From assembly GCA_002189035.1 (NCBI GenBank), contig NEEC01000013.1, forward strand, positions 1,054,001 to 1,118,000: 64,000 bases of DNA. The letters are read 5' to 3'. The stretch comes from Utricularia gibba. Lineage: Eukaryota; Plantae; Magnoliophyta. This document shows, in pieces, positions 5,831 to 15,363 of the stretch. The notes below the pieces were generated by a model. It was not told the origin of the DNA. It was given only the letters and a program-made list of their open reading frames with translations, and did no database searches. The position numbers and the translations under genes were made by a program. The number at the start of each line of letters is the position of its first letter. Position 1 is the stretch's first letter.

Positions 5831-7660
5831 AAGCAAACTTGAGATTCATATGTGGTTCAAGTACACTCTTGAGATGCTCCTATTGAAATGGCTATGTTGC
5901 AAGTGGAGCTCTTCATGCTTTTTATTCGAATCAAGTAGAAAACATAAAATTATCAAATCAAGAATCAAATTGAAAGAAAATAATCAACAATTCCAAGTTC
6001 GAATGCCTCACAAACCAAGGTTCATACTGAATGAATTCACCAATTTTTATCAATGACGAAGAACTACAATCCATAATTCAAATCTTTCCTACCTGGTGAG
6101 CTTAATAAGATTTGAATTGAAGTTTAATTCATTACAATAAAAATGTTATTATGTTCTTATTTTTACTCGATTGTTAATAGTTTAAGAAAACTATCAAAAT
6201 GTTACACAACCACAATCGAGAAGAATTTTTCAATTACTCACTCAAATCTCATGCTCTGCTTGATAAAATAATATTTTCCTTAACTCATTGAGTTATCGCT
6301 ATCTTCATTTAAGATTATTTGTTAACCATGTAAATTTTGGCTTGGGAAAAGCTCCACTGAAAGGCCTCTCTCCCTTGATATATGCCCTATCATAATGGTT
6401 GCTTAGCTTAGAAACAGTACCATGTCCCATCAACTGGACATTATGGTATGGCAGAGAGATTTACAATAGCAAGAAATCTCAACCTAGAACATAACATGGC
6501 ATTAAATGTTACACATTGCCTTTGGATTTAGATGATGAAAACTATGCCCCTTCCGATTGCCAGAATGCATGTGAAAACACAATAGGGAGGTTATTGGAGT
6601 AATAAGGAAGAAAAGTGCAATAAGGTTAGGGGCTATAAAGAAAATGATCCAAGTGGAAAAATGAATAGTTTGATGATGTAGAAAAGAACTCAATCTAGAT
6701 AAGATTAGCACATATAATTCGAATTCAAATATATAAAGACCAAGAATTAAGGTTGAAGATTAGGGATCACAGTTGAAGTTTCTATTCGAGACCAACTAAT
6801 TTTGTTTATATCTATACCATAAATGTTTTGCCAATATGCTCCCAAAAAGCTAAAGATTGATTGATGTGTAACACACACACCAAGACTTGCCACAAGAGAC
6901 CCAGAGCTAGCAAATCTCCTACAGCATAATACCACAATTGACCAAAAATACACACAAGAAGAGCAAATCATCTAATGGAGCATCAACATTCCATTTATGA
7001 TTTCATGTTTAAACTGAATGATGGTAGAGTATTTCATCAGATTAGATAACAAGTAGAACCCCTTGAGAATTATAGGTGGCAGCACACTCAACCCAAGCCA
7101 CCAGTACTTTCACTTAGGGCGCGTTTGGTTGGTGGATTTAGGTGGGTTGCAGCGTGGGATTAGACATAAACCCACGTTTGGTACGTGGGTTTCATGTGGG
7201 TAAAAATAAACCCACCTGTTGACCATAAACCGGGCGGGAACCTGTGGAGATGGGTTTAACTAAACCCGGGGGGAGGGGGGTCGATTTAGCTAAACCCAGC
7301 TCGGCACTTCCACTTTTTCCCTTGCGTGAACTACATTTGAATGCAGATCTACAACCCAGATTTGTTAGTGCTTTGCCAGTGGCGTCGCCTGTTCTTTGAG
7401 CGCAAGATGGTGGGTCTTTCGGTAAGTATGCTTTCTGTTCTTGGTGGGTTGGTTCACGGTAGCACTGCCAGAGGCCAATCACGGCAGCACCGCATACTGG
7501 ATTTTTATCTGTGAATTTCCAATTTCAGAATCTTTGGTGCTATGTCAGTGAACTTATTTTGCTCGATTTTGGTGACTGTTGAGGGGACATGGATTTTTTC
7601 ACGAAGGGTCATGTCATCTTGAGTGCGGCAGCGGCAATTTTGACTGAATACTTGGTGTAG

Positions 7661-8664
7661 ATGAATGTGTTAGTATACTTACATTGGAAGAAATATCGTA
7701 GGGGATATAGGGTGAGACGTAAGTATTCACTTACACACAAGATTCGTAGACAAGTTGAGTTTATTAGTAGGTTGGTGAGTGATGTGAACAGTGCATCCAT
7801 TGAGAATTTGAGAATCAGCCGAGATGCGTTGGGTATTTTATGTAGCCTATTAGAAACTGTGGGAGGAGCTGTGTCTCGGTGCTTCCAAAAGGTGTTGCAT
7901 GTGGTGCTTTGCTTCCATGAGGTGCTGTTAGAGACCCCAGTAGTTGATGCAGAATGTGCATCCGAAGGAAAGTTTAAAAACTTCCAGGTTGACACATCTT
8001 TCATGCTTCTTTATACGAATGTGTATCCTAAAATTGATTATGCATTTGCAGGGTTGTTTTGGAGCCATAGATGGTGCATACATCGGTATACAAGTTAACA
8101 AATGTGATGCTGCAAGGTATAGAAATCGAAAGAGGGTGATATCCACCAACGTGCTGAGTGTATGTGATGAACACATGAAATTTATATATGTGCTTGCTGG
8201 GTGGGAGGGGTCTGCTACAGATAGTCGGGGTGCTAAACGATGCACTCTCACGATCCGACGGCTTCCGTGTACGCCCAGGTATTTTACTTGTTTAGCCCTT
8301 GTGTATGTGATTCCAATGATTTTATGCACTATGTATACTTGATGACACAAGAACATATTACCTCTGTGACAATGGATATGCCAATAGGGAGGGCTTTTTG
8401 ACACCATATCGTGGAGTCCGTTACCACTTGAAGGAGTGGGGACAGGGAAATAGAGCACCCCAGAATGCCAAAGAGCTATTCAACATGCGGCATGCATCAA
8501 GCAGAAATTTGATCAAACGAGCTTGGGGCTTGATGAAGATGCGGTGGGGTATACTACGGACGGCTAGCTACTATTCCGTAGACACACAGAACCACATTGT
8601 ATTGGCATGTGCTTTACTCCATAACCTCATTCAAAATGGAGGTCCCATTGGACTTCCAGGATGA
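7661..8664 (+). pseudogene. PIF/Harbinger DDE transposase, inactivated
   Basis: Motifs GCFGAIDGAYI, TNVLSVCD, YVLAGWEGSATDSR, YYLCDNGY, PYRGVRYHLKEW, FNMRHASSRNLIKRAWG, LACALLHN. One extra G in cggggtg (~8226-8231) frameshifts DSRVLNDAL. The conserved RNxIER Glu is Lys. A segment appears deleted between TVGG and AVSR. Confidence 0.9.
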
Positions 8665-9042
8665 AGCTGGGGACACGAGTAATCTAGAAGATGTCACGAC
8701 ATGTGCTGAAGGCAATCAGGGATAGAATAGGTGGCGTGACCAGCAAGCCGGGGGGATGTACACCGAGTGGCTAGAATCCTGCAGATGCCGCTAGTGTAGC
8801 ACTGTTTTAGACATTGTCATGCTAGTGGTTTTCCTTAATTCCCGTTCAGAACCTATCGTGTTGTTTGTACTGAATTACTAAGCACAACTCTTTGCATTGC
8901 AAAGTCATGTCCTAAATTCCCATTTGTACTCCAACTTGAAATTGAAATTGCAGAGTATTTGATAGTTGCTGCACAAGTTGTTGGGATTGTACCATAGTGT
9001 CATGTCTTACCATGGGGTAACATGGTAACACACGGTGGATCA

Positions 9043-9490
9043 TTGGAACCAACACCGCGATCTTCAGTTGAGGTGCTACAAAGGCTTGTACGACACCAAA
9101 ATTGTTGGCACACCACGTGTTTCATCATATCCGGTGCTGACAAAAATTAAACATTAGATGAGTGTGAAGCTAGTGCATAGTAGTGAGGGTATTTGGTAGT
9201 ACAGCAATGCGCCATTTGACCAAACACCGGGATCCATAAACTCCAGTGCTTCTGAATGCCTGGGCTATGCTGCGTTCAGTGCTGCACCGCATGTTTCCTC
9301 GTATCCGGTGCTGTCAAGTTTTAGAAGTAAATGCGTATGCAGCTGGTGCATATTAGCGTGGGTGATTGGTAGTACAACAATACTCCATTTGACCAAACAC
9401 CGCGATCCATAATATGCGGTGCTTCTAAACGCCTGAGCTACGCTACGCATTCCGCAGCACTGCGAAAACATAATCCGGTGTTCTAAGTTC
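9043..9490. repeat. Internal tandem repeat, ~173-bp period, two clear copies plus one diverged partial copy
   Basis: ttggtagtaca...ccatttgaccaaacaccg.gatccataa...gtgcttct.aa.gcctg.gcta...atccggtg.t starts at 9193 and 9366. A weaker copy (aacaccgcgatc...atccggtgctgaca) lies at ~9043-9150. Confidence 0.7.
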
Positions 9491-9723
9491 CAAAAATAAA
9501 TTGGCATAAAATATTACAGTTATAAAATATTAATACCCCCCTTGCGCACAATAAAAGCGCCTGACATTGTGCAATTTCCAAAACAACTTCATTAATTCCG
9601 CCCATGCAACTCCACCCTTTCAGCAAACGTGCAGCAGCACCGCGAAAACAGTCTCCTTGACAACCTCTCTAGAACAGCGTCGCAACGGTAGGAACCTTTG
9701 CCCTTAGCGTTTCAAATTCTTCG

Positions 9724-10643
9724 TTGCCATCGTCAAGTAACATGTCTATTGTTTTCCAGATGTTGATGTGTGAGAAACTACGTGTCCGTTTCTCAATTCC
9801 CGATGGTTACATGATGTGGGATAAACAACCGGGCGAAACGTCGGACGGCAAACCATCATCCAGAGTTGGAGCATCGGGATTCGCCGTCAGCACCGAGAAC
9901 TTTCGGTGTGGATTGCGACTCCCCCTGCCCTCTTTCTTGGTGCACATACTTGCTGCACTCCAGATCCCACTCTCCCACCTCACACCACGTTCAGTGGTTT
10001 ACATTCTCGCATTTCTGCTGATCTGTGAAGAGGAGGGCATACCCCCGGAAATGCGTGTCTTCTTTGCGGTTTCTGTTAGTGTCCAACGTAAGGGGAGTCC
10101 GCACTGCTCGCTTCATGGAAAACCTGGTGTGGTTCTGGTTACAGACGTGAGAAGCGCATATGATGATTGGTGGACTAGTTTTGTATGGGTATGCCCACCC
10201 ATCGCTGCAGAATGGCCAACAACGTTGACAGTGTCAGAGAATGTGGGACACCCATCACGTAATCACAAACAATTACTTCGCATATTCACACGTCTTGTGC
10301 AATAGTACCCATGTTTTTTGCTGTTTTCGTTGTAGGCATAGAGGTATTGCCAAAACGTGCGACAAGGAGGTTTGTGAATTTGTTCTCTTTTAGAACAAAG
10401 TCCTTGGAGGACGTCTTGCCCTCCTTCATCAATGCCCCTAGGACACAGCATCCGTGGTGCGGAACCCCTCGACACCGTAGACAACGTAGGAGTACAAATG
10501 ATGATCCTGAGGAGGTGACCCATGAAGAGGATGAAGATGTGCAGCCAGAAGTCAAGGGCAGCATGGAGGGGCCAACACCAATCTGGACACATGACGACGG
10601 GTGGGTGCTGCCATTGCAAAGTATATCCAAATGGATAGACTGA
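9724..10643 (+). pseudogene. Cargo ORF 1: 'transposase (putative), gypsy-type'-like region followed by an acidic linker exon
   Basis: LRVRFSIP...FRCGLRLPLPSFLVHILAALQIPLSHLTPRSVVYILAFLLICEEEGIPP...DWWTSFVWV matches the remembered motif pattern of the plant Transposase_28-like family. A phase-compatible 77-nt GT-AG intron (10259-10335) would join it to the 10336-10643 frame (DDPEEVTHEEDEDVQPE). Confidence 0.55.
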
Positions 10644-10725
10644 ACGCAGAGAATATTGAACTCTGTGGTCGACTTGCATGGTATGAAGCAAGGTGGCATA
10701 TGGTGGACTGTCGAGTGATAACACA

Positions 10726-12661
10726 GCCCCACCACGGAAGTTGCTAATATTTGACGTGAATGGCGTACTTGGGGACATTGTGTATCCTCGCGAAGTCAGA
10801 TGGGGAGCGCTGAAGCCGTATGCCGTCATTTACGGGCGAAACGGTAATGCGGTGTCATTGATATGCATTTAATATTCGGTGCATGTGTTAGTACTATTTC
10901 TTGTGCTTGTAGTGTATCTTCGACCAGGTGCACGTGAGTTGATACAGTTTTGTATGGAACACTTTGACGTCGCCATCTGGTCTTCAAGAGGATGGTAAGA
11001 CTGACCACCTTGCAGGCAAGGTGCATTCCTGCTGACATTTTTTTTTATGACAGCATATGGTAGTGAACAATTGCACGATGTGGTTTAGTGGTTACTAGGA
11101 CCTGCAGCAGTCAACAAGCTCGTCTTCCAATGGGATGGATCCAGGTGTGTGGACACCGGCTGTCCGGTGCACGACAACAGGAACAACACGGTCTTAATAC
11201 GCTTCTCATCGATGATGCGCCGTACAAGTCACTACACAATCCAGTGAGTTTCTGGCTGCGCTCATTCTCCATCATCTTGCATACGATGATTGTTTAGTTT
11301 CATTGGATAGCCCGAAAATGCCATATTCCAAACAACTTTCAAGTACACCTGATAAAAGAAAAATTATGCAATAACGTTAAATGCAAATTTTCCTATCAAA
11401 TAAATTTATAACCTAACCCACATTCAAGCATAAAACAATTATGAGCATAGTGATTAGGGTGGAACACAAAGAGCAGGTATTTGTCAAGTGATTAGCCAAA
11501 GCATGAAATCAGTGTCACGTTGGTAAATTGGTCTTAACTAGGACTAAGGCAGGACTATAATGAAATACAGTAAAGAAAAGTAGCAAGTTTGGATTCGGTA
11601 GTTTCTGGAATGGAATGGGTGATGCCTTGGGACTCTTAGGGAATATATGCCTATCACTAAAAAAACTCACCTAAATCATAAATCATACAACTAACTCACA
11701 AGATCTAGGTCTACCTGTATTCTTGTTTTTCCCCCTAATCTTTGGTCTACCTCTAATTAGGGCTGTTAAGTTGGGTTTCATGATTTGGTAAGGAAGTGGC
11801 GTGACTCATGGTTTATTAAGTGTAAGGATGGATTAGCATATTTCTCCCCTTTTCACCCCAAGGCACCCCCCTAAATGCTTAGCCACTCGTGCTTAAGGTA
11901 AATGAAAATGGACAAGAAAACATCACCCACAGTATACTCATTTCACAGTCGAATACCAGAAAGCAAACAAGCAAGTAATGTGAAATGTCGACAAAAACTA
12001 AAAACGTCGCTAGCTACTCTTAGCTAGGAGTAACATTCTTCGAAAACATAAATTAGTCTTGAACTTCAGCTTCGTTCCTGTTTGTCTTCCTTCTTCTTCC
12101 TCCTCAGAAAACCTTCTCCAGATAGCTATTCGTGAGTCTTCAAGGGTAGATCTGCTTTCTCTCTCATCTTCCCCCCCTTTTTGTCCAAAATCTCACTTTT
12201 TCACCTTCTTGGACTTTGTGTGTACTCTTTTTCAGATTTCTACCACCTTCTGTGTCACTACACTGTTCATATTCGGCTCCTTGGGATTTGTGTTGCAACA
12301 TGTGCTGCATTGCTTGAAGAAAACTATTAGAAGGTTGGGACTAAATCACAGATTTAGTCCCAACTAAGACTAAATTGGCACTACTACAGTACTTATGTGC
12401 AAAAATACAAAACTAGGCAATAAAGCTTACTTTTTGTAGCACAAAATGAGTAAATTCTATGCATTGAGCCACTCAAAAATATGTGTTATCAACACCGCAG
12501 TCAATGATTGTTCGCTGGTTCGAGGAGGAGATATTAGGTTGTTCTTGAAAGCTCTCATTGACAACATGGATGTACCCACGCACGTCGATCAGCGTCGGGT
12601 AGGTCAACGTCCAATAGACGAGGAACACCCATTGTGGAAGCATAAAAAGACTCTTGTGTAA
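10726..12661 (+). pseudogene. Cargo gene 2: FCP1-homology/NIF (HAD-superfamily) phosphatase-like, multi-exon, disrupted
   Basis: Successive blocks RKLLIFDVNGVLGDIV / VYLRPGARELIQFCMEHFDVAIWSSR / KLVFQWDGSRCVDTG / NTLLIDDAPYKSLHNP / PENAIFQTTFKYT-[solo LTR]-AVNDCSLVRGGDIRLFLKAL...VGQRPIDEEHPLW, with GT-AG introns between most blocks. An internal deletion/frameshift lies between the DTG and NTLL blocks. Confidence 0.85.
11350..12491 (-). mobile_element. Solo LTR, 1142 bp (Athila-like by appearance)
   Basis: TGATA...TATCA termini with a perfect 5-bp TSD ACACC (11345-11349, 12492-12496). Removing it restores the FCP1-like reading frame. Confidence 0.92.
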
Positions 12662-12821
12662 CCGATGGTGCACCTTTGAAATTGCATACGCGGTGCTTCC
12701 ACATACGAAGTCACAACACAGTCTACCCTTTGCAGTGCTCATCCCAGTTTAAAGGATGATTAGAAGATGAAATACATCTAGTCCATAAGTCCAACATAAG
12801 GCGGAGCAGCACACAACGGAT

Positions 12822-13853
12822 TTAAGATCTACATTCGGATGCTAAACCATGCACAATAAGCTCTCTTTCACAGTCACTAGAGGCAAGGAAGTAGCGTAAC
12901 CTCGCAAGGTTGGAACTAATCGTCTCTGCTATGGTAAAACGTTCGATGGCAGTTAATTGCACCGGCATACCTCTAATGGTCTCCCCTGCCTGACGCTGAT
13001 TATCCACCAACTCCCGTGCTTGCTGCACCACTGTTAATCTCAAGTGACATAGGTCTTCGCATGTGCACACGTTAAGCTCCTTCATTTTTTTGATGAACTA
13101 CTTCATCATCGATTCCCCTTGATCCCCTGCCGCTTCATCCAGTCCGCCGCGACGACTCGGTGTTGTTGTGTGACTCGAAGTCCCTACTAGGCGTGACGTT
13201 CACACCCTCCGCAGCACAACCAATTGGGTCACAAGGTGTGTCAGCATACGAGAAGTTCATATTGAGTCCAGTGCTATCTGTGTCCAGAGGGCAATCCGAA
13301 AATACTTCCAGATTCTCCCCAACATCTTCCATGAATTTCCTCTTTTTGGTCGCGGTTACATAGCTCATCGTTTTTTCTCCTGTAGCCCGATCCTTTCCAA
13401 AGATTTCCTACCACTCCATGTAATACGGCCACGCTTTGTGTCTTAGGGTGTGTAGTCTGGGTGCATGCTGACATAATAACACAGTCAACATTAGATATAA
13501 CACAGCGACAACATGGCATACGTACCTGATCAATCTCCTTCCAAACCTCATCGTCTGCGTCTACGGTGTAGGTCAGCTCACTGAAACCGGTGCCCGACCT
13601 TGATAAAAAATCTACAAGGAGGTAGTAGTCTTTTTTCCAGGTGCGCACCTTGCTAGATATATGCGGGTGTGCGCGGATGTCGGTTCTAGGTCGGAGTTTC
13701 AAGAACTTTGTCTCTAATGCTCGGTGATACAATTTTCCAACCTTCTTTCACTATCTGCTTCAAAGCGTGGAACAAGTCTTTCTCCTTATCTGGCTTCCAG
13801 GCACGTTTCGTTTTTTTGTGAGACTCTTCCACCACGATTGGGCTATGCATACC
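12822..13853 (-). pseudogene. PIF/Harbinger Myb/SANT-like DNA-binding protein (ORF1), frameshifted
   Basis: KRAWKPDKEKDLFHALKQIVKEGWK, HPHISSKVRTWKKDYYLLVDFLSRSGTGF, TVDADDEVW, a KPWPYY...EIFGKDRATG-type block and a C-terminal LTAIERFTIAETISSNLARLRYFL. The blocks sit in several frames and lie convergent to the transposase. Confidence 0.85.
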
Positions 13854-15363
13854 TGCAATCTTTGCTGGAGGAAAGAAAACAGCAAGAACAAAGCACCTAC
13901 ACTGAGCACTTACCACAAGTAAACCGTAAAATTCACTCAAAATTCAACGGATTTCAAACGAGAAACTCTGCGCAACGAAGGAAGTATACAAACTGGACTT
14001 AACCCATGGCTCTTCACTCTCAATTACTTGTAACAACCGAGTGTGAAAATCGGTGGACAAAGGGGGAAAACTAATGGTAATAAAGAGGAATATGTCTGAT
14101 TGGTAAAGTCGGTGTGAGTCGGTGGACGAGTGTGAAAGGCTATATTGGTAAATTCCCATGAAAATTATGTATAAACCCAATTTTATACCCACCTACCAAA
14201 CGTGGGTTCATTTAAACCCAAATAATGTAAACTCATCAACCAAACATGATTTACAGAGACTAACCCCACAAACCCGGTTCCCTAAACCCAAATAAACTAA
14301 ACCTGGGTTTAGGCCAAACCCAGCAACCAAACGCGCCCTTATATGTTGTGGTATAACATGCAATTTATGAAAACATAGTATAATTACAATATTATACCTC
14401 ACTTGTCACTTATGGTGATATGTGTATAGGAATAATGGTGCTGCATTTCACGTGAAGAAGACAAAAATGACCACACAACAAACAGCCAAGCCAAAGGGGA
14501 GCTCTTTGTTAATGTAAGGAAGTACAGAATTGTGTGTAGACGATGGGGAATTTATAGATTACATAATCAGTTGCTAACATCCTAAAGTCACTCCATGCGA
14601 TAAGGGCCTAGAATTGTGCCTTTGACTTGACGAAAAACCTCAAATAATGGGATAGTAGTTGATCTTAAAGGTGTAAACCTGTTCCAACTCTTTTCATAAG
14701 CCTAAATTTGACCATCTCATGTTAAAGTAGGGTATACTAGTGTACCTTGTGACATTACACATCTCGATTAGGAGTCAGTCTCCTTAGTACGCCTCTCCTT
14801 ATGACTCCAAGCCTTATTTCTCCAATTATTCATGTTCTTCAAGAATGCGCTTCATCTTTATGACAAGGGTTTTGTTGATGGCTTCTTGAAGTACGGGCCT
14901 CGGATTTGTAAGCCGCATCGGGGCATCAATCGACTACGTGGCACATATCTACAAGAACGGTGGATGGGCTATTGTCAATGGTGATAAAGTCGAGGTCTCC
15001 AAGAATCCACCTACCGAGCATGGGATATCTTCACTCCACTTCTACGAGACAAAAGCTGCCTCACAAGTCACAGCTGAACGATTGAGTAGCAGAAAATAGC
15101 CAGAGAAGTTAAACACATTCCAAGGCCAATCCACTTTAGTACCTATTAACTTGGATAAGTTTGGTTTTATCTAAATAAGAAATTTGTTAGGTAACCTGAG
15201 TTTTTCATCCTCTGGTCACTTTGAATTCGATGTTTTTGTGGAATGTTTCAATGATGGTTATTCTCTCTTACAAAGTATAGTTTAGTAGGAACTTCCGGTT
15301 ATCCACAACAACTGGTTCATGGCGGCAGACCTCTCAAAGTCGCTGACAAGAATTGAGCCGAAA

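Follow-up and report, generated by a model that had tools for sequence, protein, structure and literature searches.

What kind of gene lies at positions 9724-12661 of this stretch of the Utricularia gibba genome (64,000 nucleotides of contig NEEC01000013.1; hereafter the window), and on what kind of element does it travel? A first-pass annotation, made without database searches, had described the region as a transposon-borne candidate fusion, in which a gypsy-type Transposase_28-like domain and an acidic linker were joined to a phosphatase of the FCP1/NIF type. We found that the region is the cargo of a PIF/Harbinger DNA transposon, whose transposase and Myb-like genes lie on either side of it. 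We think it likely that this cargo is the decayed copy of a third, spliced gene of a multi-copy PIF/Harbinger family, which would encode one protein consisting of a Transposase_28 (TRP28) domain, a linker and a NIF-like domain of the HAD superfamily. Below we consider the carrier and its copies, the two domains, the question whether they belonged to a single gene, and what such a gene might do.

The carrier element and its copies

The inverted ends of the element (7117-7139 and 14316-14339; 24 nt, 92% complementary) are flanked by a TTA target duplication at 7114-7116 and 14340-14342. All features that identify a PIF/Harbinger element were found, i.e., inverted repeats, a 3-bp TTA/TAA duplication, a DDE_Tnp_4 transposase and a Myb/SANT gene. 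The transposase exons also matched Plant_tran (E 2.6e-7) and had relatives at 54-70% identity; the nearest annotated Harbinger transposases were those of Phlomoides rotata and Bidens hawaiensis. In tblastn searches, the Myb-like gene of the window matched the Myb genes of three related Harbinger loci (L003, L004 and L007). A gypsy/Retand carrier was ruled out, because the flanking genes within the inverted ends are a DDE_Tnp_4 transposase and a Myb-like gene, and the sole long terminal repeat (LTR) is a nested solo LTR. The earlier claim that the gene is transposon-borne therefore stands, but the carrier is a PIF/Harbinger DNA transposon and not a gypsy element, as identified by the inverted ends, the TTA duplication, DDE_Tnp_4 and Myb_DNA-bind_3.

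The element shares with the canonical two-gene PIF/Harbinger transposon the GGGCGCGTTTGG-type inverted ends, the TTA duplication, and the DDE_Tnp_4 and Myb/SANT genes. In contrast to the canonical type, it holds a cargo of about 4 kb between these two genes. We compared it with five related Harbinger loci, two from Phlomoides rotata (L003, L004) and three from Logan contigs (L005-L007), with transposase identities of 53-66%. No TRP28 or HAD/NIF match was found in any of the five; the sequence of L005 and L006 comprises the transposase and no more than about 1 kb past it. Both core genes are present in L003 (9980-11395), L004 (9599-10938) and L007 (146-2866; Logan contig of ERR5639098), and leave no room for cargo between them. 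The Myb-like gene lies on the transposase strand in L003 and L004 and is convergent in L007 and in the window; the gap in L007 is about 1.4 kb. The absence of the cargo from the five related loci implies that the block was acquired in the lineage of the Harbinger family to which the window element belongs.

The cargo block is present in multiple copies. Three sequencing runs on DNA of this species (X1, X2 and X5) yielded contigs that covered the whole stretch at 80-99% identity, with even depth over 9500-11300 and 12500-12800. Hence, the TRP28 and HAD parts are similar in copy number. Within the 64-kb window, no second copy of the cargo was found.

The copy in the window is interrupted by the solo LTR. 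Positions 11387-12496 were about 10 times deeper in the contigs, i.e., the LTR family is about 10 times more abundant than the Harbinger cargo. Contigs of X1, X2 and X5 all joined 11344 to 12492, which shows that the LTR is missing from the other copies, and without the insert the reading frame runs on uninterrupted. That an LTR breaks the gene had been proposed before, and this was borne out by a 1142-bp insert with a 5-bp duplication that is skipped in three DNA runs.

Three further observations concern the element and its repeats. The segment 9041-9447, between the transposase and the TRP28 exon, consists of three direct repeats that are imperfect (79-86% identity) and about 173 bp long; they might represent either a repeat array internal to the Harbinger element or its regulatory region. 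Weak relatives of the solo LTR (72-75% identity) are found at 49798-49936 and 50660-50762. Differences between copies over 9500-12800 were mostly C>T and G>A (e.g., 142 and 137 of the 578 variable places in X5). An excess of these two changes is typical of repeats that are methylated and silenced, and the excess in the cargo copies would fit a silenced family whose methylated cytosines were deaminated.

The TRP28 exon and the phosphatase-like exons

The features of the element and of its cargo are listed in the table below. All blocks of 9724-12661 were found on the forward strand when the open reading frames (ORFs) were read, as had been noted earlier. The predicted GT-AG intron of 77 nt that links the first two ORFs in phase was likewise recovered; it is T-rich, and its A+T fraction (AT) of 0.64 compares with 0.48-0.49 in the adjoining exons. 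Within exon 2, the basic stretch (RHRRQRR) precedes the acidic one. The presence of FCP1-type motifs further downstream with introns of their own was upheld by the in-phase GT-AG introns at 10844-10912 and 11244-11310. Of the two open frames of exon C, exon B splices in phase into frame 0 only, so that the internal deletion of the first-pass annotation is no more than a candidate.

Features of the cargo gene (upper rows) and of its carrier element (lower rows), with positions in the window
Feature	Position	Strand	Description
Cargo exon 1, TRP28 domain	9724-10258	+	PF04195; first in-frame ATG at 9742; intact
Intron 1	10259-10335	+	77 nt, GT...AG, AT 0.64, T 0.39, in phase
Exon 2, putative linker and first phosphatase exon (exon A)	10336-10843	+	RHRRQRR, acidic stretch, motif I FDVNG
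Intron	10844-10912	+	69 nt, GT...AG, T-rich, phase 1
Putative phosphatase exon B	10913-10994	+	motif II AIWSS; PF03031 and TIGR02245 matches (see text)
Intron	10995-11107	+	acceptor uncertain, 11098 or 11107; manual reading, only frame 0 in phase downstream
Putative phosphatase exon C	11108-11243	+	motif IV LLIDDAP; frames 0 and 1 both open
Intron	11244-11310	+	67 nt, GT...AG, phase 0
Last exon, first half (PENAIFQTTFKYT)	11311-11349	+	frame reading
Last exon, second half to stop codon	12497-12661	+	frame continuous with 11311-11349 once the LTR and one duplication copy are removed
Nested solo LTR	11350-12491		1142 bp, TG...CA ends; duplication ACACC at 11345-11349 and 12492-12496
Complete PIF/Harbinger element holding the cargo	7117-14339		inverted ends, TTA duplication
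Harbinger transposase exons, several frames	7944-8664	+	DDE_Tnp_4 PF13359: E 2.6e-6 (7944-8339), 4.1e-10 (8398-8661)
Myb/SANT-like gene, convergent with the cargo gene	13277-13940	-	PF12776 Myb_DNA-bind_3, E 0.0012, below cut-off

The first ORF (9724-10302, forward strand, 193 codons) matched Pfam family PF04195, Transposase_28, with an E-value of 2.8e-11 and 43.9 bits over residues 57-114. This score exceeds the gathering cut-off of the family (26.2 bits), and the ORF is thus a member of it; the Transposase_28-like domain of the first-pass annotation was correctly recognized. When 1.84 billion representative proteins were searched in full with HMMER, 81 TRP28 relatives were returned. Because the best E-value among them was only 2e-9 and identities did not exceed 33%, the TRP28 domain of the window represents a deep, unannotated branch of the family. 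In phmmer, alignments to TRP28 proteins spanned approximately residues 16-170, i.e., beyond the 69-position core of the Pfam model.

The AlphaFold2 model of this ORF (alignment of 38 sequences; pLDDT 83.6, pTM 0.77) was ordered to about residue 165. Its fold neighbours in the ESM Atlas were plant (Streptophyta) clusters only, several with PF04195, at TM 0.69-0.77. Proteins similar to At3g60930, which carry DUF1633 and DUF601, were also among these neighbours. Against solved structures in the PDB, Foldseek found no match at E <=0.001, and the best VIA-align Z was 3.4; with no meaningful match of this kind, the fold offers no functional hint. A word search with the 193-residue ORF gave no match within the length band of 106-338 residues.

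In flowering plants, TRP28 is a domain without a known function; Retand gypsy retrotransposons typically encode it on the strand opposite to gag-pol (PMC11963269; PMC6317226), and it ranks among the commonest transposon-associated domains of plants (PMC11963269). The third-best relative, P0003 (locus L002 10001-18318, GCA_054771495.1), has this Retand layout, as it is antisense to ORFs for reverse transcriptase, RNaseH and integrase. No NIF or Harbinger similarity was found around P0003 or around another relative, P0001. The layout of P0003, one TRP28 relative whose genomic surroundings were characterized, and the published association (PMC11963269) support the interpretation that the TRP28 part of the cargo derives from a retrotransposon. 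With the antisense ORFs of Retand elements the window copy shares a domain above the Pfam cut-off and the predicted fold of plant TRP28 clusters. It differs from them in its PIF/Harbinger carrier, a DNA transposon with whose transposase it shares the strand, in being spliced and followed by HAD exons, and in its identity of at most 33% to any database relative.

The evidence for the second domain is of several kinds. Three HAD motifs follow one another along the forward strand: LLIFDVNG (motif I) at 10744, AIWSS (motif II) within 10913-10994 and LLIDDAP (motif IV) at 11202. AIWSS lies 52 residues past the Asp of motif I and LLIDD lies downstream of it, so that the Ser/Thr of motif II and the acidic pair of motif IV have the order and spacing of the family. 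When the 64-kb window was translated in six frames, a generic motif I pattern was found a single time (0.065 expected); the ordered set of motifs I, II and IV occurred once in that translation and in none of 200 shuffles; the patterns for I, II and IV were written after the sequence had been seen. The first-pass annotation had stated that the first HAD Asp (FDVNG) and the DD of LLIDD are retained, and both could indeed be read, in exons A and C, respectively.

Hidden Markov model (HMM) searches were run on the single exon pieces of the phosphatase part. Exon B (28 residues) matched PF03031, NIF, at profile positions 38-61 of 160 with an E-value of 0.0024; its 18.0 bits are below the gathering cut-off of 21.8 bits. 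This is the position in the profile expected from the 31-residue distance between the match and the motif I Asp. Exon B also matched TIGR02245, HAD_IIID1, weakly (E 0.18). For exon A, the nearest named Atlas clusters in a language-model search were all fragments of the HAD superfamily, with NIF in second place (0.84), which we treat as a lead only. The exon pieces had no match among solved structures, an Atlas search with the C-terminal piece gave nothing recognizable, and a word search with the 71-residue C-terminal ORF gave no candidate.

From these motifs and matches, the phosphatase part is a probable HAD domain of the NIF type, and not a proven member of the family. Of the FCP1/NIF-like assignment proposed earlier, the ordered motifs and the HAD-like exon A speak in its favour, whereas the NIF score of exon B falls short of the cut-off; profile searches placed Transposase_28 above its threshold, and NIF, in exon B only, below that of its own family. 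The domain resembles NIF/FCP1/SCP-type HAD phosphatases (PF03031) in how motifs I, II and IV are ordered and spaced, and in having one exon that matches the NIF profile. It differs from them in its DxN instead of DxD, in its score under the cut-off, in the lack of a recognizable motif III Lys, and in its location on a transposon, where it is probably fused to TRP28.

One gene or two captured fragments

In the window, three open frames tile across the junction of the two domains: frame 0 (10332-10640), frame 2 (10595-10744) and frame 1 (10687-10869). In a part of the other copies (16-54% of contig depth), a single extra base is present at 10602/3, and likewise at 10696. These extra bases sit inside the two frame overlaps, each with the sign needed to reach the next frame. 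For a bridging frame of 35 codons, the probability of being open by chance is about 0.1, and the base composition of 10601-10715 is exon-like (AT 0.53, T 0.25). The bridging frame does not read the TGA at 10641-10643 as a codon, and all other aligned contigs differ at 10643.

The tiling frames, the extra bases in the overlaps and the exon-like composition lead us to read 10336-10843 as one ancestral exon, which probably comprised both exon 2 of the TRP28 part and the first exon of the phosphatase. The breaks within 10600-10727 look like two single-base slips, near 10602 and 10696. A stop codon at 10641-10643 and a frameshift before 10726 had been annotated here; the copy is broken at this place, but the breaks are better described as these two slips, with the stop off the bridging frame. 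Together, the tiling frames and the single-base differences in other copies make a single TRP28-phosphatase reading frame plausible.

The copy in the window cannot make this protein, owing to the two frame slips in the linker, an apparent frame problem in exon C and the LTR inside the last exon. That this copy is broken, as was recognized at the outset, is confirmed by the slips and the LTR.

Several results weigh against a single TRP28-NIF-like gene. The extra bases at 10602/3 and 10696 were scored site by site and may stem from different copies. By itself, exon 2 had no homologue and did not align to TRP28 proteins; spliced to exon 1, it lengthened the TRP28 alignments only marginally. A read-through of the HAD exons, joined by X, matched none of the 81 TRP28 relatives. 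On the side of the phosphatase, the NIF score of exon B is below the cut-off, as described above, and four of the five pieces gave no HMM family match. Moreover, neither open frame of exon C offered a candidate for the motif III Lys in the window copy, where this exon is possibly damaged. Finally, RNA evidence was found for none of the junctions: no run listed as holding the stretch is recorded as RNA, and one presumed RNA run gave nothing, which does not prove that the gene is silent.

These results bear on the alternative that the cargo arose by neutral transduplication of the Pack type, in which two unrelated fragments, one from a Retand accessory ORF and the other, introns included, from a NIF-like gene of the host, came to lie side by side but never formed one protein or came under selection. 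Capture of genes by plant DNA transposons is common (PMC8903248), and we found neither RNA evidence in the runs examined nor a database protein that combines both domains; in addition, the frame breaks exactly where the two parts meet. However, three open frames tile across this very junction, single-base differences in other copies restore its continuity, and a bridging frame of 35 codons would be open by chance with a probability of about 0.1. Moreover, the TRP28 ORF is intact and folds confidently, yet it is at most 33% identical to known relatives, and is therefore not a recent fragment. On balance, we regard neutral transduplication as unlikely.

Another possibility leaves the front of the gene unbroken at this place, by assuming a third intron at 10601-10715 that holds both the stop and the change of frame. 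GT-AG models for 10601-10715 and for 10605-10692 are both in phase, but the segment contains several GT and AG sites, such that in-phase pairs are expected by chance. Its AT of 0.53 and T of 0.25 contrast with 0.59-0.64 and 0.39-0.43, respectively, in the three well-defined introns, its acceptor has no pyrimidine tract, and frame 2 is open across it. Based on composition and acceptor quality, a third intron appears less likely than two slips, and we consider it rather improbable.

That the region is decayed transposon DNA whose ORFs and motifs arose by chance, and was never a phosphatase-like gene, would agree with the lack of HMM matches for most pieces and with the definition of the patterns after the sequence had been seen, but is highly improbable in view of the rarity of motif I (one against 0.065 expected) and of the ordered set (0 of 200 shuffles), the NIF match at the profile position expected from the distance to motif I, the HAD-only neighbours of exon A obtained by a separate method, the in-phase introns and the frame that continues across the empty LTR site.

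Possible function and significance

A working copy of the TRP28-NIF-like gene would encode one nuclear protein, with TRP28, a plant-only fold, at its N-terminus, followed by the basic-acidic linker and by a NIF/FCP1-type HAD domain with a DxN motif I. The motif reads FDVNGV; thus the first Asp of the usual DxDx(T/V) is kept, and the second is replaced by Asn. In HAD phosphatases, the Asp two residues past the nucleophile is the general acid/base. A protein with Asn in this place should work slowly, if at all, and may retain its substrate. Judged from this general mechanism, an enzyme like FCP1 is less likely here than a phosphatase with poor activity or none. A non-catalytic member of the NIF/FCP1/SCP family exists in TIM50. 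The DxN domain would most likely bind or trap a phosphoprotein, for instance a phospho-Ser substrate resembling the C-terminal domain (CTD) of RNA polymerase II, rather than turn it over.

What such a protein would do for its carrier is a matter of speculation. It may be an accessory factor of the transposon that touches the transcription or silencing of the element. One could imagine that the TRP28-pseudophosphatase counteracts silencing, by binding phosphorylated CTD-like targets of the transcription machinery or of RNA-directed silencing and thereby helping its carrier, although we give this particular idea little credence.

Among the ten longest TRP28 relatives, Pfam lists TRP28 only and no NIF part. 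Among the papers retrieved on Harbinger in combination with FCP1, and on plant transposable elements in combination with 'NLI interacting factor', none described such a gene; those retrieved on transduplication and anti-silencing were general reviews and accounts of Pack-TYPE capture. Apparently, the TRP28-NIF-like cargo is an undescribed transposon accessory gene.

Captured domains that are kept by transposons are known from the ULP1-protease genes of Kaonashi MULEs and of CACTA elements, and the VANC gene of VANDAL21 is an anti-silencing gene. Pack-TYPE capture by plant DNA transposons has been described as well (PMC8903248). Like these, the cargo of the window is an extra gene in a DNA transposon, probably at least partly host-derived, and multiplied with its element; unlike these, it is carried by another superfamily, it combines other domains and it is known from sequence alone.

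The dead copy in the window by itself adds anatomy only, namely the frames at the junction, the set of introns and a break dated by the solo LTR. The gene would add a case of a captured host domain that is kept in a transposon, comparable to ULP1 in MULEs. If TRP28 is indeed fused to a probably non-catalytic, phosphoprotein-binding fold, this would be the first testable hint of the partners of TRP28, and its weight would be greater if the fusion were carried by several superfamilies of DNA transposons.

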